A DNA stretch of 64,000 nucleotides from Cyanophora paradoxa CCMP329 (GCA_004431415.1 QPMI01000516.1:186001-250000); one strand, 5' to 3'; positions 1,819-17,506 are shown, counted from the first letter of the stretch. Translations and numbers: made by a program. Notes: generated by a model from the letters alone, not told the origin.

Positions 1819-4800
1819 ATGGCGCCTGACGACGATGCTGACAGCAACGACGACCCCAACGCGGCGGCTGACCCCCGAACTGGCCGTGGCCCGGAAACCG
1901 GGCCGGGATCGAAGCGACAACGCCCGCAGTCGGCAGAGCCGGCCACCCCGTCCCGCCGCCACACGGAGAAGTCTATGCGTGGATACAGGCCGGGCGACAC
2001 GCCAAACCGAAATGGCAACCCCCGAATGGTTCGGAACCTGACGCTCCCGCCTGCAACCACCGATTCACCCGTTCATACCTCCCTTCATGTGCAGAATCCG
2101 GACCAATCGGACGCCGCCCGGCCCGGCGCACGTAGTGGCAGCCAACCAGCACGCCGCGGACAAGGCGCCGGCGAGGCTGGCGCCGTCGGCCCCGTAGCAG
2201 TGCGCCCATTACTTCCCCGGCACCCGGTTGGCACCTCCCCCAGTCGCCCTCACAAAGCGAAACCGCAGCGTAACGACCTCCGCCAGTACTTCGCATCTGC
2301 CGCTGGGCCATCACAGGTGCCCGCGGCGTCACTCCCGAGCTCGTCGAGCTCTAGACCCATCCCGGCGCCCATGCCAGTGAGCCCCGCCGCCCTCTTGCCC
2401 TGCTGTAGTCGCCCAGCCCCACTCAAACGATCACAGGCCCGGGCCCGCCCAGCTGATGACCCCCCAGTGGCGCTGGTCGCCAGTCCCGTGCGCCCCGCTC
2501 ACGACCCACCCGCCGATGGCGTTGCCCAGAACCAATGCGCGCGGCGCCGGCGCCAGGGCGAACTCGAGGGCGCCCCGCAGAACGCCCCCCGGCCCCGGCG
2601 GGGCCCGCCATCCCCGTCACCCGAGCGCCATCGCCACCGCGGCCAGCAGCACCGCGATCAGCACTCGGACAGTGAATATGAGGACGCTCAGCAGGGAGAC
2701 GACGATCAGGCGCCCGGCGGCAGGCGCAGCGGCGGGGGCCAAGACCGTGGCGATCGCGAAGAGGGGGGCGAACGAGGCAGCCGGCAAGCTGAGGGTGACG
2801 GAAACCAAGGCCAAGGCGCAGCTGGCGACGGCGGACTGGCCGGCGGAGGGCAAGGAGCGAACCCTGGAGGCGACAGCGACGACGAGGGCCACAGGGGACA
2901 CCGGAACGGGGGCGCCGGGAACCGCAACGATGCCGACGACGTCGACGTCGACCCTAATGACGCCGACGACGAGAACGAGAGTCCGCACCGCCCCTGCCCC
3001 CGTGCTAGCGACCGTCCTCCAATCAGAAGGACTGACCATGAGGGCACTATCGTAGGAGATGACGACCGAGACGATGACGCTGACCGTGGAGCTGGAGAGG
3101 GGGGGGTACACCGCAACGATGAACACGGCGGCATGGGCCAGCGTGAGCACTGCCCCGAATACTGCGGGGGGGACACCCAGATCACCAATGCGGCGGGCAC
3201 CCACGCAGATGGCGAGGGCGAAGATCACCACGCAGGGGACGCCGAGGGTGACGCCGACATGGGGATGCACGAGAACGCGGTGAGTACCGCACTGAGCCCT
3301 GGCAAGCTGGGGCCCAATGCCTGAGGGCCGACCATGTGGGTGCCCCTGCAGACGGCCGAGATATCGAAGAGGCGCATGCTGACCGTGGCGCTGGAGGTGG
3401 GGGGTACAGCATGGAGATGGCCAGCATGGCGGAGCACAGGGCGCCGATGACGATGCTGGGGTGGCCAGGGTAGGCCCCACACCGCCCCATGCACGGGCTG
3501 CGCCCAGAGCGCTGACGCAGGGGGGTACATGTAGGTGGTGCACGTGAACGCGCCGGCCAGCACGGCGGCCGCAACGGGCACGGCGGACGGGATGGACACG
3601 GCGGCCAGGCCCGCGGCGCCGGCGATCGGCACGACGAGCGCATTGCGCGCAACGGTGGTCAACGCGACGGGAACGACGGGCCTGGCGGGCCAGGCGGACG
3701 GGACGGCGGAAACTGGGCCGGCGGTGCTGGACGCCGTCTCAACTGGGACGGGGAGGACGGCGGCGACAACGATGGGCAAGCCCCGGCCGGAGGCGACGGC
3801 AACGTGTACGGCGGAGGCGGTGGCGGCGGCAGGCCGGCAGCAGCAGCCAACGGGACCGGACCTAACACTGCAAAGGTCTATCTGGTCCTCTTCGGCGACG
3901 GCCTGGCCTCGCGACTCGTCCCCCCAGACGCCCCGCAAGACACCCGCGACGAGATCCTGGCCTCTGCACGGTCCACATGCCGACGGGAAGGCCTCCAGAT
4001 CCGAGCGGTGGTCAATGAGATCCGGGGCCGCATCGCCGCCGCACACCAAGCCGACCGGGCCCGCATCCGGGACCACCGCATCGGCGAGGGTGCCGACCCC
4101 TCAGCACTCCGCAACCCCCTCCCGCCGCTGCCAGAATCCAGCACCGCCGACGACGCTGTGACCCTCCGCTGCGGCCACGTGGTCTGCGGCGACCGGATCG
4201 AGGAGTCCAGCCCGTGCATCGCAATCAAGTATGCCAACATCACGGAGGCTCGGCGCGCAGCCCAGCTCCTTACACCGGTCACGCCGCAACTCGCGACGCT
4301 CGCCGTGCTTGGCGCAACAGGGCCGCTCTCAGTCGGCATCCACGTTGACGCCCCCGCGTCCAGCACCGAGTTCTTTGCGATCGAAGCCGAGCTAGGGTGC
4401 CGCAAGATGGAGAGGGGGACACTCTCGAGCTTCATGAAGAACACAGTGCTCCGCGCCCTCACGTCTGGCATCAACCCCGACGCGTACGAGGCCAACGATG
4501 TCGTCGTGGCCTACAACGAGCTGGCGGTCAAGTGCCCGAACGGCCCGACAGCCCGCTACCTGATCCCGGCGTCGCACGCACAGGCCGCGCAGAACTTCCT
4601 GGTCCGACCTGCCACCTGCTCTTACCACCTTACCCCCCTTCTGACTCTCCCCTCCCTCCCTTGGCAGGCAAACGTTGGCTACCTCCTGGCCGCAGACAAC
4701 AACTCAGCCCTCATCACCCTCCCCCGCTTCCAAGACCCGGACCCGGACTTCTGCTGGAACAACGACCGCAAGCATGTCCTCAACGGAGTCCTCATCTTTG

Positions 4801-5942
4801 CCGGGGCCCACGCCGGCTGTGGGCACGCCGACGCCAACCAGGAGCATGTCCCCTTCCCCGGCGACGAATGCCAGCTGGACATCACACAGCTTGTGCCGGA
4901 CCGGCAGTTCATCATGGACCTGCGGGCCGCCGGCGTCCTGTACATGACAACCCGACCGTACCCCACCTCTGTCCGCCCCTACCCATGCAAAGCCCCCCCT
5001 ACTTGCGCTTACCCCTCCCTCCCGCAGATCGAGGTGGGTGTCCAAGCCTCGATGGTTGACGCCGAGCGTTACTCCACCGGTGGTGGCCGCCAGCTCCGTG
5101 TGCTGGATCTAGATGACGAACAGTGGGCGGCGAGGCGCGAGCGCATGGGCTTCACGGCGCACCCAACCCTCTCCGGAGCCCTCGACCTCCACGACGCGCG
5201 GGGGAGACAGGTCATCATTCTCGAGGTCACCACGATGTGGTACCCCCACCTCCCCTCCGCCCGAGGCCCCCCCCCCATCTCACATGATTATCCTTACCGG
5301 CAGCACGTGGTCATCCCCCTCCCCCAGTCCGAAGCCCTCATGTGCGCGGCACACTTCCTCACCAGCGTCAACAACATCAACCAGCCCCTGCTCAACTACC
5401 GTGGCGAGCTCGGGGGGGGACACAACTGCCAGCCCCTCGACCGGCGGAACCGGGACGAGCCGGCAGCTGCAGGAGGGCAAGCACCTGGGGGTCGGGCGGA
5501 GGGGCGCGGTGGACTGTATGTGGACGCTGCCTACCGCGGAGCGCGTGGCGGGGGCCCCGGCGGGGCTGCGGGCGGCCGTGGCGGACTTGGAGGGCCCGGA
5601 GGCGACTGGGGCGGTGCAGGCGGCGCTGGAGGCCGCGGCGGGGCTGGCGGAGCCCATGGAGCCCGCGGCGGAGCCGGCATCTGGGATGCCCGCGGCGGGG
5701 CGGGCGCAGCCAATGGCCGCGGTGGCCGTGGGGTGGACATCATCTGGGGCGACCTCCCCCGGGGCGGCTTTGCTGGGAGAGCCCGGGGCGGGATGGGCCC
5801 CCCCCGCGGTGGGCGCGGACTCCCAGGCCGTGGCGCCGGCGGCAGGGGTGGACGAGGAGCACGTGGTGGCCGCGGCTTTGGGGCTGGCGCCGGCCGGGGT
5901 GGCGGCGGCCCTGGACAGCAGCGGCTGCCCTGGCAGTACTGA
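1819..5942 (+). CDS. LINE ORF1 (frameshifted): acidic/Gly-rich disordered N-terminus, globular core (~3870-5440) with a weak RRM-like motif, RGG-rich C-terminus
   Basis: Candidate ATG ~1819 (MAPDDDADSND); open frames to 3324 and 3804-5942 are linked by frameshifted low-complexity sequence; CIAIKYANITEARRAAQLL resembles RRM RNP1-helix; many RGG repeats in the last ~150 aa; lies upstream of APE-RT. Confidence 0.6.
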
Positions 5943-6090: not shown

Positions 6091-7694
6091 TGTACGGACA
6101 CCTCGACGCCGAAGTCACAACATCCAGATCTCGAGCTAGAGCTAAACAGGTGCAGAGCGGTGGTACCAGTGGGGGACCCAAAGGAGAACACCCGTACTCA
6201 TACGCGCCGGACGCGCACCTGGCCCTGTAGATCTAGACCCGATCACGACTTGCACGCGAGGCCCAGAGGGGTACGTGGGTGGAAAACGTACCCATCAACT
6301 GTGCGGATCCGGCTAGCCCGGGCTCGCGCACGCTCGACAGCCACGCTAGGAGAACAGTCTAATCATGACTGCACCACCGGCCTGAAGCGCCAGCCTGTTC
6401 TTACGACACCGACCGCTGCCTCCCGGACTCGCCCCAGCAGGCCGCGGATCCTGCTGTATACGTAACACGACAGCTAGTCCCTAAGCGAAGCCAGGAGCCC
6501 GAGGCCGGTGCCGAAGCCGGCCCCCGCTACAGACCTGTACCTCAGAAGCTACTAGTACTACGGCGCCGGCGCCGGCTAGCCTGTCATGATCAAAGATGCC
6601 AGAGGACCGACGCCGACGCCGGTACCGGTGCCGATGCCGGCCTCGACCTGACGGCGCCGTCGGCACGTACGTATACGTATACGCGGCTCCGAGTAGTTAT
6701 AATGCCTTGCACTAGCACTAATGCATATGATACCGAAACAGCTGGCGCCGGCACGCGCACCGGCGCCGGCGCCACCTTTAACTTGAGTAGTAACAGCCCC
6801 CCCGATCACGACCTAGCAGGCCCCAGATCCCGATCTAGAGCTAGGGCTGCCAAAGATGGGTACGCCAAGGCAATCACAACAGCTAGCGCCACCGCCACTA
6901 CAATTACTAGTACCAGTATGACACTGTGTATGTGCGCCGCCGGCGCTACCGCCAGCATAGCATACGTAGCCTCACTGTCAGTGGCCCGCACGTGTACGGT
7001 CTGCACTGTAGACTGCACGGCGGTGCACGCCGCGGCCGGCGCTGCAGCTGGATCCCGACCCGAATTCGAATCTCCGCGACGCCTACCGCGAGCTCGATCA
7101 CTGGCTCCGGCGAACCGTCCGAGTCCCCGGCCCCAAGACATATGCATGAACAGAAAAAGAATTTTTTCTGCCCTCCCGGACCGGCCGCTAGCGCCGGCAC
7201 TACGTCGTCGTCGCCATTCATTGTGCACCCGCCAATCGGGAGCAACCAGTCAATCGGGCCCGATAGCTGCCATGACCACAGCGCTAGAGGCTCACATGCG
7301 AAGGCGGGGTGGCGCCGCCAGGCAGCGGCAGCGGGCTCGGCCCTCGCCGCGGCGGGCCAAGCTGACCCGGCCATGCTGGCCCATGCATCACGCGCGAGCC
7401 CGGCATCATGGCATCCAACGACAGCGCTATCCGGCCCGCCCCCCGCGCACCGCCGCGAAGAACCCAGGCCTGGAGTCTGGCCTGCACCAGGGGCACAAGA
7501 AAATGTTCCACCCGCCCAGAGTCCCATGACCGCATATAACACGCCTGGCCCGCTGGTGCCGGCCGTCCCGCGCCGCTGCTCCGCACGCTATTTCCCCTCG
7601 AGCTGTTTACACACGAGCGCCTCGGAGCCAAACCTGCGGGCACTCACCGAAAATCGGGTATCATACGCCGCCGCTTTGACTCTGACCAGTACTG

Positions 7695-8585
7695 GAGACT
7701 CGCGACCTGGAACGCCCGCACCTGCTCTAGCGTCAACCATGTCGGCCAGATCCAGAAATATATGCTTGACTGGGGGCTGAGCGTATTAGGGGTCCAATCA
7801 CTTAACTGCACCCAGGCTACGGTCAGAGCGATGCGCAGGTCAGTGACATCGGGGCTCATGCTCACGTCCGTGCACGCCGACTCGGCCACGCGCACAACTA
7901 GTGCTCAGGAGCTCCCAGCTCGAGCCCCGCCCACCCCGCCCCTCTCGCAGAAGAAACTCCGCCAAAATCGAGCCTCCCCCCGCGGCTCCGGCGTAGCCCT
8001 TTTTCTCTCAGAAAATATGGCCAAGCACTGTTTTAAGACCTACACAATGCCAGGCCGCGTGGCCGGCTGTGAGCTTCGATTTGCAAATAATGTTCAGATC
8101 TTTATCGCCAGCGTGTACCTCCCCCCCGGCGAAAGTCGGACGGCGCGGTCTACTGAAAGTGCGAAAATCTTCGACTATCTCCGCGCGACCATGTACGCTG
8201 ACTGGGCGCTCCGCCCCCGCGCGCACTTTTTCCTCCTTGGCGATCTTAACAGCTGCCTCTGTCCCGAGACGGGCAAAATCAGACAGGGGCAATATGCGAC
8301 CACACGAGAACCTGATCACCGCTGGTGGCATGAACTGCTTCACGACTGGACCCTCTCCGACGCTGCCACAGCCATGGGCACCGACGACCAAATCACCTTC
8401 ATATTTCCTGACGCTCCTGACAACCCAACCCTCGAGGCATCGCCCCAGATGGCACGCTCCGCCATGCTACCAGGCTCGACTACATCTTACAATCCCAAGT
8501 CGCGACTAACGCCCTTCGAGCGGCCCAAGCGTCGCCTAGAAACGCCCCTTTCCCCTCGGACCATTTCCCACTCCTTGCAGAGTAC
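7695..8585 (+). CDS. Apurinic-like endonuclease (APE) domain of ORF2
   Basis: RLATWNART, VLGVQS (canonical QE), GSGVALFL, IASVYLP, LLGDLNS, ITF, then after a frameshift TRLDYILQS and PSDHFPLLAE. Confidence 0.92.
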
Positions 8586-9579
8586 AGTAAACGGGCCCTG
8601 GCCATCAAATATAAACTGGGGCCCCAGCGTCTTCGCCCGGCCCCCCGCGTTTCAAGTACGCGACACAGGCATCGCTCACAAAAATTCGCTTCAAAGAACT
8701 ACTGGAAGAAAAGCTACAGCAGCCGGTGCCGGGGTCCTCAGCTAGCGTACGAGAGCTACTCGCAACGCTGGAGGACGACGACGGCACCCCGCCAGAGGAC
8801 CGCCTAGCCCGCCTGCACGAAGCCCTCAAATCCACTCTCGCCCACATCTGTGACCTCGGCCAATCGCCAGTATTTGGCATCTTTACGCCCCCAAAAATCC
8901 CTCAAAAATTCTCCCGCCGCGGCCGCCCCGAATCCAACCTGCTCACGAGGGCCCAGGAACTGCGCAAGGCATGGGAAGCGGCGCGCCACGGGATCGACTC
9001 CACGCCGCGCCGCGTACGGCACTCCCTCTCTGACCTGCGCAGGGCAATCTCAAATCACAACCGCCGGCTTGACAAACTCCCAATAGACAAGCGGTCAGGC
9101 TATCTTAAACTCCCACTACCCCTGTGCCGCCGCCATTCTCTGCCCGACAACCAAGCTGGCTCGACTATTTTCCAAGCTTCACCACTTGGGCCTCGGCCTT
9201 GGACACCAAAGTCCAGGCCCACATTAAACGTTTCGAAGCCACGACAATCAGAGCAAACCGAGAGCGCTCGCAGCGCATGTTCAAGACAGACCTCGCCCAA
9301 TACCTCCGCCAAACACTTGAAGCCCCAGAACGCAGGCCGATTACCTCCTTCTCCCTCTGCCACGCTGGAGAATATCAGGTATACGGCAATGAAGATGCAG
9401 TGAAACAGTTCGCACGCCATCACATGCATGCCTGGACACGGCAGCGTAGCCCACTCACAGCGAACAGGGACCCGGGCGCGCTGCCACTTAGTACATGTGC
9501 ACAGGAGGCCTCAATATGGCGCCGACTTCACTCCCCGCGCCAGGATATTGATGATGCAATTTATGTGTACCTAATGGAA

Positions 9580-10740
9580 CCCACCAGCGAGGCCGAACTG
9601 GACCGAATCATCGGCTCTCTCCGAAACGGTGCGGCGGGGCCCTCGGGATTTTCCCACGAAATGATAAAAATGCTGTGGACGGCACCGGTCCTTTCAAAGA
9701 AAACTTGCGAAGAACTACGCAAGGCGGGCCTGGACCCGGAGCCGCTCCAAGAACCCGATAACCTGTTCCCGACGTGCCGCCAGGTAATCCTCACTACGGT
9801 AAATCTGATCCTAAAACTCTCGTCTGTCCCTGCGCCCCTTCTTCACGGAAATATATGTCTTATCCCCAAGGGCGGGGAATGGGATGGGCACCCTGACAAT
9901 GTCCGCCCATTACACTCCAAGAATGCACGCTGAAACTCGTGACGGCAGTCCTCACTGACCGCCTCTCGCGCGTTCTCCGCAAACACGACATATTACAGGG
10001 CGCGAACTTCGCCTTTACTCGAGGCAAGTCCACCGACGAGCCTCTGTACATGCTGCGCGCGCTACTGGAGGACGCAAAACAATTCTCGAAACCGATCTAT
10101 CTGCTACTGCTAGATATTCGCAGAGCCTACGACAGCGTCAGCTGGTCTAGCATGGAAATGGCACTCCGCCGCCTAAAAATTCCCGAACGGTACATAAGCC
10201 TCTACGGACAAATATCAACATCACGTACAGCGTCCGTCGCGACAGGGTACGGCCCAACTGACCCCTTCGATGTGGAGTGCGGGCTCCCGCAAGGAGGAAC
10301 CGAGTCCCCAATTCACTGGCTCATCTTCTATGACGTATTTCTATCGGCTTTACGCGAAGTCAGCGCTGCGGAGAGCACCCAATACTCCATGGGCCCGCCG
10401 CCCTCTGCGTCTGACGCTAACCTGCCCGCGCCCACCCGACGCCTGCGAGCGCGCCTGCCTCGGGTGACCTCGCCGGGCAAGCATACGCAGACGACACCGT
10501 ACTTATTAGCGGTACAGCCCGGGGCATCCAGCTGCACGCAGACCTGGCCTCTGAATTCTTCTGGATACATGATATTGCCCTCAACGCGAAGAAAACCGAA
10601 TTTACGTACAACAACGTCTCCCCACGCCCGTCTGCCCCGCTACTAGGCCCGCCCGATGCTAAAGAACCGGCCGACAAAGTCCTTGCGCCGAACAAACCAT
10701 TCAAGGTGCTCGGGTCTGGATGACAGCAAATCTGGACTGG
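9580..10740 (+). CDS. Non-LTR reverse transcriptase domain of ORF2
   Basis: AAGPSG, LIPKGGEW..NVRPITLQE, LLDIRRAYDSV, GLPQGGTESPIHWLIFYD, AYADDTVL (YADD 10484-10495), LNAKKT, FKVLGVW. Confidence 0.97.
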
Positions 10741-12309
10741 CGGCGGCAATTTGAGGCTGTATACTCAACAGCTCGGGCAGCCTGCGCGATACTAAGGCGT
10801 AAGAAACTCACCGCCAAAGAGACGATATACATAGTAAATAGCGTCCTTCTCCTCGCATCACTTACGCCTGCAAGATTGTTTCCTTTACCGAGAGACAATG
10901 TGCCCAGCTCGACACTCTCTGGATGACGCTCACTAAACATCATGCCCGCCTTAGGGGTCCACGCCCAACGCGCTCATGTGGAGCCGAGGCTTCTACGGCC
11001 TCAAGAGAACGGAGGACGAACAGCTGGCCATTCACGTGCTCGATGAAACCATCCGCACGAACCACCCCTGCTTCTCCCGTATATCATGCACCGCATTTTC
11101 GCAGCGCAGGAGCAACTGGGGCTTCCCCTTCCGCCATACTGCTACCCCAATTTACAGCTGGGCCCCGCAGCCTACAGAGACAATTTTGCACTAGCTGTAG
11201 CGCGAAATCTGACCCGCGCCGGCTACAAACTCGACTCAGGCAAGGACTATCTCGTTCCGGCCCTGCCTCACCCGCAGCTCGAACGCCGCTTTGTGCTCAC
11301 AACACTGCTCCCCCGCGCCTCCTGCGTGAGGCTGCACCATTCCTTTGGCGCCACGATATCCTCACAGCTGCTGACGTCACGGGCCCGACGGCGTCAGTGT
11401 GCTCGACTGGATTAGCTTATGGGGCAGCGGGAAAATTAAACAGCGACTCAATAGACCTCCCTCCTGGTTCCCGTCGTTCACCCGAGCAATATGTCAGCCC
11501 GTCGGCCCGCGCGCCATCCCCCGTCGTCTCCGCTTCCCCATGCACCTGCAGCCTGCGCAAAATCCGGCTGCAGCCCAACGTACCCTTCTTGAAGCCGGCC
11601 TGCTCTCGCCCCAGTACAAAGTCGGCGGCTTCGTTTGGACAACGGAAGCGTATCTAGGACGCATCTGCAATATCCGGCGGACAACTGACGCTGACGACGG
11701 CAGAGAACGCGTCCTAGTTGAGCTCGAACACTGGGTCCGCCGAGACAAAGGCCAGGACGACCGAGAGGACCACATATATGACACCACCGGCGAACCCGTC
11801 TCCTTCTTCCGCTGCATAATGGATCCCAAAGAATGCGACAGCCGCTTCACAGCGAAAACGCCGGAAGCAGAGGCTCTCCGCCGCGCATGTGACCACTCAG
11901 ACCCGGCCTCCCAACGGTGCCGCTGGACCGAAGACACAGCCTACATCTACCCCGCCCGACTTCAGAGCCTGGTCCCCGAGTCGCGGTCAGGCCGTGTCGC
12001 CGAGCATGCTCGCATTTTCCTTGAAGATAAAATAACGTGGTGGCCCGAGTTCCGCGACACTCATTTCCTCCCCCCGTGGGAACAGGACTGGAATTATGAT
12101 CCAGATGATCACGAGGCGCCCCAGCGGCCAGATGGAGTCGCCGCTCGCGACCCTGGGACCGTCCCCCCGCCGACAGCGCCTCGGGCCTACCCCCAACGCC
12201 GACAGTTGAGCGACTTCTGCATCCCATCGTCAGAGTATGCTGACCCATTTTGGAACCTGATTGCCGCGGAGCTCGGCCGCACCTCCCTCCCGCTCGACCG
12301 CGAGCGCCG

Positions 12310-13345
12310 ACTCGCAGCCACGGATGCCAGTACCATGGACGCCGCCTCAGAAGCTGCACTCACGGCCTACGCTGGCGTCTGGCCCCGTGAGAGCAACCCG
12401 GCCTCACTAGCTGACGAAGCTGCCCGCACGCAGCGAGGGATAGCCCTCCGTCAACAAATTCACGCACTAGCTGACCGGCTGGGCACAACCGGCGTCGATA
12501 CTGACCAGGTGGCGAAACTTCGCGGCCTTGCAGACGCCATCCCGACCGACGGCAGCGACTTTTTCGTGGCCCCGTGTCCTGGCACAGTGAACAATAACAA
12601 AGGCGAGCTCCTCGCCGTCCTGTCCGCCCTGCTGCTCTCTCCCGAAGGCTGCACAGTGAAAACTGACAGCTTCACTGCAATGGCGGACTATTCCAAGTAC
12701 GTCTCGCATCGCGCCACCGCCACCCTTCGCAGCTGCATTCGAGCCTCGTACTCCCATCACCTTAAAGCGTATGCTGAGGTGCAGTGCATCCGGCTTGCAC
12801 TAGCAAGGGCCGTGGCACCCGACAGAATGCTATACGAAGAACGTCTTGTCAAAGTCAAAGCCCACCAGAAAGAATATATAACTCGGCGCCGCCCGCGCCC
12901 GGCTGCCGCCCCGCTGAAGTGGCCGACCACGACTCGGAATCAGACGCAGACTCATACGAATCCTACCTCTCTGACCGAGACCCGGTCGCTCCCGAACCTA
13001 CGGAGGCGGAACTGATAGCTCAATATGGCCCCGGCACGGGAGTATACGAAGGGCGCGCGAACCCGCTAACCGGCGCCTACAACTATATCTCCGAGCACCT
13101 TCGCGCGGGCACTGCCCACATCCACCGTCGGAACGCCCGCCGAGCCGTCCACCAAATGCAGCAAGCGTCTCGTGCCTCCAGGCGAGCAGAACGACAGAGG
13201 CGGCGCGAAGCCCGGGCTGCGCTAGGTCAGCATACACCAGGACTACCAAGCCTGCCCCTGCTGGTGGAAGAAGAACGGGTTCCAAACCGTGCATTTGATC
13301 GGGACAACGCACGAGCCGACCGCCTCGCCGCTGCGGCACTGGCTC
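12310..13345 (+). CDS. RNase H domain of ORF2, with two long insertions
   Basis: ATDAS (D), NNKGELLAVLSAL (E), VKTDS (D), LVKVKAH (H), NARADRLA (D). Confidence 0.85.
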
Positions 13346-13864
13346 TGCACCCCAGCGCAGACCTCTCCCGGCAGGCACTCGACGGCCGGGAACTTTCTTC
13401 CTGGGCTGACCCTGAGGAAGCAGCCTGGCAATCTGACCCCGAAGACCCGTCCCCGGCCGCAACAGTTGCATCAAAACGCGCGTGGCACGCCCGCCGGGAG
13501 CCGGTCTTTCCCCTGGCGGATTTGACATGGTCCTACTCTTTTCGCCCCCGCGCTGCTGGAACGAGAACTACGACACTCGTAGAGTTTACAGAGTTGAGTC
13601 TGACCCGCGAGCACACGTAAAAAATACGTGCGAATTTCGGAACTTCTCCCGTCTCCTTGCAACCGAAAAATGCCATTTGGGCAGTCCGGTCGACCGTGCG
13701 CGCCTCGCCCGCGAATACCGCAAGAAAGGGCTCTCCCGCGATGCATCGCACCCCCTGAATGCGAGGCTTGCTCAAATCACGAAATTCAGCTCCGGACTCG
13801 CACCCCTCATGGGTGAACGTGCCCGGGACGCTCCCCATCTCTATAGTGCAATAAATCCAAATGG

Positions 13865-14600
13865 ACTCTGTGTTCGCGCAGGCTGCGCGTCCGTGCTAGG
13901 CCCAGACGGCCGGCCCACCCCAGCCCCGCCATGGCAGCCGCCTGCGTCCGACCCCGAGGAAGACGGTGGGATCCGGAACGGCCCCAACGGCGACCCGGCC
14001 GCACGAGACGCACGCCAGGCACCGCGGCCCCCCCTATCGTTAGCGGGACGCCTGAAACCCACGACCACGCCTTTGGTCTCTGCCCAGCAACACGCACCCT
14101 CCGTATCGAAGCCCAAACTAAGATATTCAACCTATTGTACGAAACCATATCGTCTCAACGCCTAAAAACTGCAGTCGATGCGGCTGCAGCTGGCGACCCA
14201 GCCTACAAGCTGCCCCCGGCCCTGCGCCAGGACGGACTGTTGCTGCGCCAACTGTTCCGGCCTTTGCACTGGCTGACGATGCAAACTGGGGATGGTCAGA
14301 GCGTCAGCGCCAACGGCCGGCCCCCTTCCTTCGCACCTCACGCAGCCACTCTATGGCCTGCCCGATCAGTGGCAAAGCCTCGGCAGCAAACTCTTCGCCG
14401 ACCTTGCCTGCGATTCTCCCCGCCACACCGTCAGGCTCCTCCTTCCTCGTAGCCTCATCCCTGCCCTGATTTACTTAGATGTACGTAGACCGGCGGCGCT
14501 TAAATGCGCCAACGCAATTATGGCCACCATCATAGACTACACCCAAGCAATCTGGAAGGCTCGCAATAGCGAAGTCCAGTCCTGGCAACGCCGACACGGA
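13865..14600 (+). CDS. CCHC zinc knuckle and IWxxRN motif region of ORF2
   Basis: LCVRAGC ... ETHDHAFGLC (with Pro-rich insert and frameshift); later QAIWKARNSEVQSW, typical of L1-group ORF2 C-termini. Confidence 0.7.
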
Positions 14601-15090
14601 TTACTCGCCGCCAAACTCATGCACCTCGACCCTCGCGCCCTGCTGAGCCCTCACCGGCGAGGTCGATGCCAGCCAGGATTAGGGATGAGCCCACGAGCCC
14701 CTCGACCGTGGTGGCCCGGCCCCGCGTCGACGGATACCCAACGGCCAGCTCACCCTCTCATCAGACCTACAATTAGTCAGCCAGTCGCGCCGCTCTCGAA
14801 CCCGCGCTGCTCCCCAGCACCGTGGCCGGCCACGGCCCCCCTACAACAGCGATACCCGCAACGCCGGTGCCCCTACCGCCGCCCCGAGCTCGAGCCCGAG
14901 ACCTAGACCTGTAGCTAGGCCGGCAGCTGCTAACAGCATCACCAATATTAATGCCAGTAATGCAGGGTGGCCGGCTCCGCCGTCCCCACCTGCATTACGT
15001 GCCGCCTGGGCCCAAGTACGCCGCTCCCCTACCCGCGCTCTACCCAACAGCGCAGTCCGAGAGCTCCCGGCAGCCCGCAGCGGCCCCGCT

Positions 15091-15735
15091 GCACTGTTTG
15101 GCAGTGCCTCCGTATCGCTCCATGACCTAGCCACGCTGAACGGCTCGTCCTGGGTGAACGCCGACGTCATCAACTACTACCTTGCCCGACTAAACCTTCT
15201 TGCGAGCGGAGAAATTAACCCTCGCCGACGCGTCTTACTTTTCCCGCACACTTTCTACGCCGCTATTCCCAGACAATAACGCCGGCGGCAGCGCCCGCCT
15301 GCGCCGTCGCACCGCTGGGCGCGGAATTAATGTCTTTGACTATGACCTATTACTCTTCCCTATCCACACCCCGGGCCACTGGATCCTTGCAGCCCTCCAT
15401 CTCCGTGCTCGCCGTGCTGAACTATACGATGGATACAATCTCCCGGGCCCGAAGAGGCCCGCCGTCAACTCCTGCCCTCCTAAAATGGCTCAACATGGAG
15501 CGCGAATGCGCAGCCCTAGGCTCCTCGACCGGCGCCGACGACGCTCTCACCTGGCCCCTCCCTCAGCCACCCGATTCCCCATCCCGGCCCAAAACGATCG
15601 CTTCAACTGCGGGATTTTCGTCTGTGCCTTCGCCGAAATACTTGTCCGTGCTCTGGAACATGACCCACGGCCTACACACCCTCCTTCACGGGCACTGTGT
15701 CTAACTGCGCCACCTGGCGCGGCCTCATTCTTTCT
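15091..15735 (+). CDS. Ulp1/SENP-family (peptidase C48) cysteine protease domain at the C-terminus of ORF2
   Basis: DLATLNGSSWVNADVINYY; NVFDYDLLLFPIHTPGHWILAAL (His ~15377); ELYDG (Asp ~15428); PAQNDRFNCGIFVCAFAE (Gln ~15590, Cys ~15608). Confidence 0.9.
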
Positions 15736-17046
15736 CGGATTCTAGGCTCGCAGGCCTTGGATACGGAGGCGCCCACGAGCACCGCCTCCCAGCCCGAGCA
15801 GCCCCGGGCAATACCGGTGGCTGCGCTGGCCCCGGGAGAACTGCCACGGGATGCCCCCTCAGCTGCCGGTGCGGTTACGCTGCTGCCTCCCCGAAGCCCT
15901 GGCGCAGCACAAACGCAAAGGAAAATGTACCGCTCCAGTGTCGCCCCCCAAAACCAGCGAGACAGACCGCGCCCCCAAGATGAAGCCATTGCAGGCCCAT
16001 CCAGGCCCAAAATAGTCACGCCCGCACCGGAACCCCAATACCGGCCCCCGCTGAGCGCGCAGCCTACCCAAGGCCTGCGGCCCGGAACTCGCGAGCAGAC
16101 ATCCGCACCTTCTTCCAACCCGCCCGCGCCCGTCGGCCGTCAGCGACACCTCTATAGCTAGGCCCAGAGTCCAAAGGACAGTCCGCCAACGCAAGTGCCC
16201 CGCCTGACACACCAGTGGCACAAGCCGACGGCACGGCAACAGTGCGGACGCGACGCCCGCGCCTCCTTCGAGAAATTCAAGAGTCGGCGGGATTCCGTGC
16301 AGCCCGAGGCAATAATTCCGGACCCGGACCTCGCCCCCGCAGATCTAGAACAGCTGCAGCAGCTTCCGTCACCCCTGCTGCTGCTCATGGTCACGCCCAG
16401 CGGCGGGATGGAGCGTCGTCCGCAGCCGCATCAGCTGTGCCCGAGCCTCTTCCCGAACCTCAAGACCGGCCTCCCCCACAAGACCGGCCGCCGCCCCGCC
16501 CTCCCCACCGAAGAGGCCCGGCCTCACCCCAGCCTCCTCCCCGCACCCTCCCTCCTCCACCCTTCCTCTTCTCGAAACGGGCTCTCCAGCTCCACCCTCC
16601 CATCTCGCCCCTCCAGCAACCTGTCCCATCTGTTCCCTGTCGCTCCACCGACACCGCCACCTCCACCGCCTTCCACGCCCGCTCCTCTGTCCTGCACGGG
16701 AACACGCGAGGTACCACCGCGGAGATCTCCTCCTCTCTCTTCTCATCTTTGGGATCTCGCCGCTTGGCTTTAAACCCTGAGCCTGCCAGCCCAACAATCT
16801 CCCCGGCCCCAGCCCCCTGCCACCTCTCTACCCCACCCCATCGTGACCGGCCCTGGCCCGTCGCGGGGGGGAGGCTCCGAGAGAGCCGCCTCAAGGGTAG
16901 AGGGGGCGGGGCTCGCAATAGGGTATAGCCCTTGGGGCGCCTAGTCGGAGACCCAATAGTGGGGAGTAGACTAGGCTAAAGTATATTAGTTGGCCTAGGG
17001 TAGACCTAGGCCTAGGGTAGACAGAAAACGATGTTTTTTGTGTACC

Positions 17047-17095
17047 AGGGGCTCTGTCCCCTAATAAACTACGGAAAACTCAAAAAAAAAAAAAA
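17047..17095 (+). terminator. LINE 3' end: short hairpin, polyadenylation signal and poly(A) tail
   Basis: AGGGG-CTCTGT-CCCCT stem-loop, AATAAA 17063-17068, A14 17082-17095. Confidence 0.8.
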
Positions 17096-17289
17096 GCGCG
17101 GCGGGCCGGGCATCTCGCCGGCTCGGGGCCTCGGGCCAGAGAGTCACGGCGTGACTGTGAGAACTTCACATCACAAACTCACACTGGCAGTGCAATACAT
17201 ACGCCGCACTGCCGCGGTGGCAGGCTGGCAGCGGCGGTGCGAGGCAGTGAGAACTGCGCTGCTTACTAGTAGCTATATACTCTATTATA

Positions 17290-17506
17290 CTGTAGAACTG
17301 GTTAATTTAGTACAGGAAAATAATTAGTACTTCGCCAAAACTGCCACTTTAGCAGCTGGTGAATTTTTAGTAGATCAGTCTTCGACCCGGGGACGGTGCT
17401 ACCCCTAAGAATTCTCGGCTTTAGCTAGCGAGAAATATTTAGTAGATCGCCCAAAAACATTTAGTACTATAAATATGCAGCCCACTAAACATTTCTAGCT
17501 CTCCAG
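17290..17506. mobile_element. Possible MITE (imperfect TIRs, TA flanks)
   Basis: AT-rich 217 bp; left CTGTAGAACTGG..TTTAGT vs reverse complement of right end CTGGAGAGCTAG..TTTAGT; TA on both sides. Confidence 0.35.

Follow-up and report, generated by a model that had tools for sequence, protein, structure and literature searches.

The locus described here, from the glaucophyte alga Cyanophora paradoxa CCMP329, raises the question whether a LINE with an APE-type endonuclease carries a Ulp1/SENP-type protease at its C-terminal end as a domain of its own, and if so, what such a domain could do for the element. The window that was analysed is a stretch of 64,000 nucleotides (GCA_004431415.1, QPMI01000516.1:186001-250000; positions are counted from its first letter) and is GC-rich (58-82% in 2-kb bins). 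The PacBio assembly of C. paradoxa measures 99.94 Mb at 67.6% GC, and the genome paper treats LINEs by a percentage only (PMC6704402).

The LINE occupies about 7.6 to 17.1 kb of the window on the + strand, and a second copy was not found within the window. The features recovered along it are collected in the table. For the reverse transcriptase (RT) core the Pfam match to RVT_1 (E 9.6e-14) reaches 52 bits where the cut-off is 29.6, and among PDB sequences the RT fragment matches R2 RTs (3e-8) better than human L1 ORF2p (0.016), both of them non-LTR-type proteins like the RT itself. For the endonuclease the Exo_endo_phos match stays below the Pfam cut-off (E 2.2e-4, 21.5 bits against 24.5), with the motifs WNAR, RLDYIL and SDH seen, the latter two in frame 3, and for RNase H the Pfam match is below the cut-off both in the window (E 0.0067) and in the related gene model P0163 (E 1.9e-4). 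The knuckle region is placed with zf-RVT clusters by ESM Atlas language-model features at 0.91, a lead only, and sequence searches of the PDB gave nothing useful for the APE, for RNase H or for the stretch after the CCHC. Together these results support the backbone proposed in the earlier note on this DNA, namely APE, RT, RNase H, CCHC and IWKARN, with an APE-like endonuclease and a weak RNase H that both score below the Pfam cut-off.

Table. Features of the LINE and of its protease domain in the window
Feature	Position	Strand	Remarks
APE-type endonuclease, RLATWNAR to PSDHFPL	7696..8573	+	split between frames 1 and 3
Reverse transcriptase core, LIPKGG, GLPQGG, AYADD	9859..10700	+	frames 1, 3, 2
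Probable RNase H, motifs DAS, NNNKGELLAV, KTDS	12311..12800	+	weak Pfam signal
Conserved region with CCHC zinc knuckle, ends IWKARN	13518..14567	+	zf-RVT-like
Zinc knuckle parts	GLCVRAGC 13863-13886; ETHDHAFGLC 14054-14083	+	
IWKARN	14550-14567	+	frame 3
Pro/Arg/Ala/Ser-rich linker, IWKARN to protease	14568..15100	+	variable between families
Ulp1/SENP (peptidase C48) catalytic domain	15103..15657	+	Pfam, residues, frame-corrected HMM alignment
WVNADVINYY	15151-15180	+	N-terminal part of C48 domain, frame 1
Tunnel Trp	15151-15153	+	C48 domain residue
Catalytic His	15377-15379	+	C48 domain residue
Catalytic Asp	15428-15430	+	C48 domain residue
Oxyanion Gln	15590-15592	+	C48 domain residue
Catalytic Cys	15608-15610	+	C48 domain residue
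Pro-rich tail with conserved hydrophobic C-terminal peptide	15658..16780	+	stop 16778-16780
C-terminal peptide HRGDLLLSLLIFGISPLGFKP	16715-16777	+	frame 2
3' UTR	16781..17094	+	AATAAA 17063-17068; 14-nt poly(A) 17081-17094 = element end

Downstream of this backbone, the window as assembled gives a Peptidase_C48 match in frame 2 (15194-15742; Pfam PF02902, E 6e-13, 49.6 bits against a cut-off of 20.7) that covers profile positions 68-189 of 217 despite a mistranslated middle. The His and Asp are 17 residues apart and the Gln and Cys 6, as in yeast Ulp1, and an alignment of 100 C48 relatives has the same His, Trp and Gln throughout, with Asp and Cys kept in nearly all of them. The two tunnel tryptophans that clamp the Gly-Gly tail in SENPs, here within WVNAD and GHW, are retained in the protease as well. 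With a Pfam score above the cut-off and the residues at Ulp1 spacing, the claim that WVNADVINYY, a His-Asp-Cys triad and an oxyanion Gln mark a C48 domain is borne out, and on its sequence we identify the segment as the C-terminal catalytic domain of a Ulp1/SENP-type cysteine protease (clan CE, family C48). Two details of that claim needed correction. The feature had been placed at 14650-16773; the C48 domain does lie within these limits, but we set the coding end at 16777 instead of 16773 (frame 2, directly before the stop) because the C-terminal peptide is common to related proteins. The domain had also been described as encoded, with an intact triad, in a frame open from ~14647; the catalytic residues are all present, but in the window as assembled more than one frame is needed to read the domain, and between Asp and Gln some 38 codons are mistranslated.

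Such breaks affect the entire LINE, the coding path of which switches frame every few hundred bases in the window. Logan contigs from two C. paradoxa DNA runs (X3 and X5) were aligned to positions 11400-17399 and showed 0 mismatches to the window; they differed from it only by extra single C's at the starts of C runs. The contigs added 43 single bases in 6 kb, and all of the 12 positions that were listed (12908, 14027, 14256, 15447, 15474, 15559, 15663, 15853, 15888, 15971, 16066 and 16118) are C's in C runs; the contigs that cover 14069-15399 and 15370-17027 are 9 and 15 bases longer than the window, respectively. Since the contigs only add single C's and never disagree otherwise, we consider the frameshifts in the window to be assembly errors. 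When four of the listed C's are restored (15447, 15474, 15559 and 15663), ordinary C48 sequence appears between Asp and Gln, and this stretch, which is nonsense in frame 2 of the window, then aligns with the related proteins P0164 and P0165, whose His-Asp stretch also reads like the corrected window. If two more C's are added near 15259-15281, an HMM of 32 cellular C48 proteins can be aligned over the whole catalytic domain at E ~1e-33 (residues 32-216 of a frame-corrected translation that starts at 15010, on HMM positions 49-216).

An evaluation by codon usage led to the same picture. A path finder, in which the sole switch allowed was one base missing in a C run, recovered a single stop-free path over 7576-14645 with 16 switches. 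The predicted switches at 12907, 13515 and 14257 fit the gap counts of the contigs in all intervals that could be checked: zero predicted and zero in the contig for 11818-12721, one for 12692-13427 and two for 12692-13568. C homopolymers are under-called by the assembly in 11400-17100, and probably across the whole element, so that frameshifts in the repeats of this genome are likely artefacts and should not be read as decay. Once the contig-supported C's are restored, a Cys-x-Cys...His...Cys motif also becomes readable at about 15850-15960 (+), just 3' of the protease; this motif could represent a small zinc finger, although the related gene models do not show it.

Is the protease then a part of the element or only a guest in it? 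The C48 domain is located upstream of the AATAAA (17063) and of the A run (17081-17094) and thus inside the element, in agreement with its proposed place within the retrotransposed unit. Two short-read contigs (14069-15399 and 15370-17027) independently span the protease junctions, and in X5 the protease contigs have depths of 614.5 and 615.3 where those of the backbone contigs are 497-662, with a similar pattern in X3. A diverged copy, ~85% identical, is found at about a tenth of the main depth, a ratio that recurs in both runs. This would put the near-identical copies at about ten, each of them with the protease, although the depth of a contig cannot be equated with a number of copies. Ulp1 domains are common in DNA transposons of the MULE and CACTA types, and the segment might be a passenger without a role, be it a piece of a DNA transposon nested in the LINE, a host SENP fragment brought in by transduction or retro-copying, or an assembly chimera. 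We consider this very improbable: the depth equals that of the backbone, independent contigs cross both junctions, and around the segment there is no TIR or TSD but only short imperfect GC-rich repeats. The possibilities raised in the earlier note, that the segment could be nested within the LINE or missing from its other copies, are made unlikely by these data and by its retention in the sister families described below, in which, at a protein identity of only about 45-65%, the collinear order and the catalytic His/Asp are kept and in which a conserved C-terminal peptide follows the domain. The protease is an integral and conserved domain of a young (recently active) multi-copy LINE family, probably of C. 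paradoxa.

The sister families emerged from searches with a 546-aa open stretch of the RNase H region and with the gene model P0100, both of which returned only EukProt proteins with names of the form tig..._g..., the style in which genes of the C. paradoxa PacBio assembly are named. Twelve such models, located on nine contigs, share the order of the window (about 45-70% identity, i.e. diverged sister families), and ten of these go on past the zinc knuckle and IWxARN as far as C48; P0163, for instance, contains in this order the RT end, RNase H, the conserved block, CCHC, IWQARN, a linker and C48. The assembly behind these models is prone to errors, and false introns may have been introduced in them to get across frameshifts. 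Between the window and the sister families the C48 core is 49-67% identical, compared with ~44-52% for the RNase H region, 68% for the block that precedes the knuckle and ~30% for the linker. Conservation of the protease is thus on a par with that of the enzymatic parts. The Gln/Cys part of C48 is visible in the window only and not in the related models. Three models (P0100, P0164 and P0165) extend, beyond a variable Pro-rich tail, to the hydrophobic peptide at their extreme C-terminus that is also found in the window, with 65% identity to the ends of P0164 and P0165 and 41% over a longer stretch of P0100; this peptide could be a membrane/pore anchor or a protein-binding helix.

A further conserved block is situated at 12900-13900 (+), between RNase H and zinc knuckle, and its part at 13.5-13.9 kb is up to 68% identical between subfamilies (tblastn HSPs to sister-family proteins at 13512-13910, mostly 13563-13910). 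The block is without a Pfam match, a PDB match or detectable C48 similarity. A motif in it ('FDMVLLFSPP..CW') was considered as a trace of a dead second C48 domain before the zinc knuckle and was rejected, for the element in this window, at a profile-profile probability of 0.3%.

Whether the protease is translated as a part of ORF2p was addressed by frame arithmetic. By homology the frame is 2 at 14069, 3 at IWKARN, 1 at WVNADVINYY and 2 at the protease core, so that a continuous reading of 14069-15399 needs 2 + (2 or 5) + 2 insertions; the contig has 9, which equals 2 + 5 + 2. Were the two parts in unrelated frames, such a fit would arise by chance one time in three. A stop-free path through the linker with five C-run insertions exists as well, but lends weak support because such paths are easily found in GC-rich DNA. 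The linker of the window shows a weak low-complexity similarity to that of P0164, spread over three frames, which is a hint only, and a diverged copy is shorter by 368 nt of the linker (joint 14599 to 14968). Taken as assembled, the window could also be read differently, with the protease unfused to ORF2 and in an ORF3 of its own further downstream in the element, which would be reached by reinitiation or translated from a sub-transcript: a frame open from ~14689 overlaps the IWKARN frame, which closes at 14903, and the linker is poorly conserved. We regard a separate ORF3 as improbable, since the 9 contig-supported insertions in 14069-15399 exactly suit a continuous frame, subject to the one-in-three chance just given, and at nine related loci both parts occur together in one gene model (ten models in all). 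Hence the earlier proposal of one ORF from APE to Ulp1 holds in so far as the frame arithmetic fits and a stop-free path exists, whereas the coding path in the window itself is frameshifted, and we consider it likely that APE to C48 form one ORF with the protease as the last domain of ORF2p. Contigs of two putative RNA runs touch 16128-17068 only, in part from related copies, and leave the protease core without cover.

The origin of the protease was approached with a 183-aa piece that was compared with 1.8 billion cluster representatives. The nearest C48 relatives are 30-40% identical (38% at most in the exhaustive search with this piece) and none is a copy of the family; 98 of the 100 nearest proteins carry Peptidase_C48 only, and no RT or transposase domain occurs among these 100 save in the LINE models of this genome itself. 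Names among the top ten include sentrin-specific protease 1(-like) twice (a tardigrade protein and a JGI/IMG entry) and one nematode 'ubiquitin-like protease family' protein, next to an amoeba match with a transcript label only, and an error-free piece of 56 aa has SENP2 and SENP1 as its best PDB matches. The nearest relatives of the LINE protease are, by these comparisons, cellular SENP1/2-like SUMO proteases. The SENP relatives and the retention of both tryptophans together suggest that a cellular SENP-like domain was captured and that its substrate is a Gly-Gly-ended Ubl, most likely SUMO. Most likely the source was a SENP1/2-like gene of the cell and the capture took place in a common ancestor of several LINE subfamilies, which have kept the domain since.

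Other mobile elements with cysteine proteases offer a frame for comparison, as such proteases have been gained several times (NeSL/Utopia, Dualen, MULE and CACTA). NeSL-1 and Utopia-1_TSP are single-ORF, RLE-type LINEs of nematodes with an N-terminal Ulp1-like protease (PMC4640811), the position that the earlier note had given for RLE-type NeSL. The element shares with NeSL/Utopia, which have a single ORF, that a non-LTR retrotransposon carries a Ulp1-like (C48) protease, yet those have the protease at the N-terminus and a restriction-like endonuclease at the C-terminus, whereas here an APE-like domain is N-terminal, a probable RNase H is present and the protease comes last; Pfam and PDB searches gave no RLE motif or match after the CCHC. 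The hosts differ too, nematodes there and a glaucophyte alga here. That no RT-bearing protein occurs among the 100 nearest C48 relatives, the own genome aside, suggests a capture independent of NeSL/Utopia. Dualen, a LINE with a Josephin-related protease (PMC9977147), is similar in another respect: Dualen/RandI are large algal LINEs with APE, RT, RNase H and a cysteine protease (PMC9977147, PMC4640811), and the RT found here is, in addition, nearer to R2-type RTs than to that of human L1. However, the protease of Dualen is Josephin-related and accompanied by a restriction-like endonuclease, where the protease of the window is C48, and the region after RNase H looks zf-RVT-like here. Sequence searches with the frameshifted ORF pieces returned no Josephin or RLE match in any of them, searches that a very diverged RLE could escape.

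With its protease C-terminal and neither a restriction-like endonuclease nor a Josephin domain found, the element falls outside NeSL/Utopia and Dualen. As to the L1 clade, a CCHC (zf-RVT-like) C-terminal domain is characteristic of it, and such a region is suggested here (the 0.91 lead mentioned above); the RT fragment scores higher with R2 than with human L1. Compared with SENP1, SENP2 and Ulp1 themselves, the catalytic domain, the tetrad, its spacing and the tunnel tryptophans are alike, but the identity is only ~30-40%. Where the cellular enzymes have an N-terminal targeting region, the domain here is joined to a protein of a retrotransposon, and behind it comes a Pro-rich tail whose hydrophobic end is conserved. 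KI-MULE and CACTA elements of plants are DNA transposons that captured a C48 domain; they have it in a separate gene or fused to the transposase gene, whereas here it is part of a poly(A)-ended retrotransposon without TIRs around it. In the literature that was searched, which did not extend to Repbase, Ulp1-like proteases of LINEs are N-terminal only (NeSL and Utopia), and an APE-type LINE that ends in Ulp1 did not turn up, in line with the earlier note, which knew of none. The arrangement has apparently not been described before and extends the known LINE architectures by a new domain order, within a first description of glaucophyte LINEs.

What the protease may do for the element can be narrowed down to a few readings, among them the two of the earlier note, deSUMOylation of silencing factors and processing of the polyprotein. 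The one we favour, with moderate confidence, is that it is a SUMO/Ubl-directed hydrolase. ORF2p would most likely be made with the protease as its last domain and the protease would be carried in the LINE ribonucleoprotein, where it would act on a Gly-Gly-ended ubiquitin-like modifier, most probably SUMO. The targets that lose their SUMO could be host factors of chromatin, repair or silencing, or else the protein of the element itself, and such removal would take place wherever the element is expressed or integrates. The catalytic activity, the substrate, the benefit to the element and the single ORF are what we infer from sequence data, and clan CE also includes viral polyprotein-processing and deubiquitinating or acetylating enzymes. 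More tentatively, a host SUMO protease might have been recruited as a counter-defence that, in cis with ORF2p, removes SUMO from silencing heterochromatin or from the repair machinery; we see this as possible but rather unlikely. If true, the domain would be a LINE-encoded anti-silencing effector and would suggest that transposons are under SUMO-dependent control in glaucophytes, as they are in animals and fungi.

The main rival to a SUMO/Ubl-directed hydrolase is that the protease processes the element's own polyprotein of ~3000 aa, by cuts at Gly-Gly-like sites in disordered linkers that would free the endonuclease/RT, the zinc-knuckle module and the protease. Clan CE proteases of adenovirus, poxviruses and ASFV do process polyproteins, and the same has reportedly been suggested for the N-terminal Ulp1 of NeSL. 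The very long coding path with its long low-complexity linkers would suit such a role, and so would the occurrence of Ulp1-like proteases in other single-ORF LINEs (NeSL and Utopia; PMC4640811). A conserved Gly-Gly does exist near 13.5 kb, where the conserved block begins, but this places it inside that block and not in a linker, and a recurrent cleavage motif was not found in the linkers. Moreover, the nearest relatives are cellular SENPs and not viral processing enzymes, and Pfam detected no ubiquitin-like domain in the element, which together make self-processing rather unlikely in our view. As this is a young multi-copy family with diverged sisters in a culturable alga, and the protease is of the SENP type, the choice between SUMO removal and self-processing is directly testable.

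Several observations concern the ends and the surroundings of the element. Beyond its 3' end, the flank at 17200-17480 is AT-rich in a GC-rich genome and has a contig depth ~10x that of the LINE, the shift of about ten-fold falling in the 17200-17399 bin, and many contigs break at 17286-17288 and 17355-17360; the flank resembles a short repeat of high copy number, distinct from the LINE, which seems to have inserted into this repeat or next to it. At the other side, the 5' end was not located, and the search for a TSD gave one 11-mer repeat at chance level. Further upstream, the window begins with a tandem array (1-1481; GC-rich units of 139 bp, 10.6 copies, 96% matches) that runs off its start and might conceivably be a monomer-type promoter at the 5' end of the element. 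Between this array and the APE lies a stretch of 514 codons (3870-5411, +) with LINE-like codon usage, zero frame switches and no Pfam match, which may be the ORF1 of the LINE.
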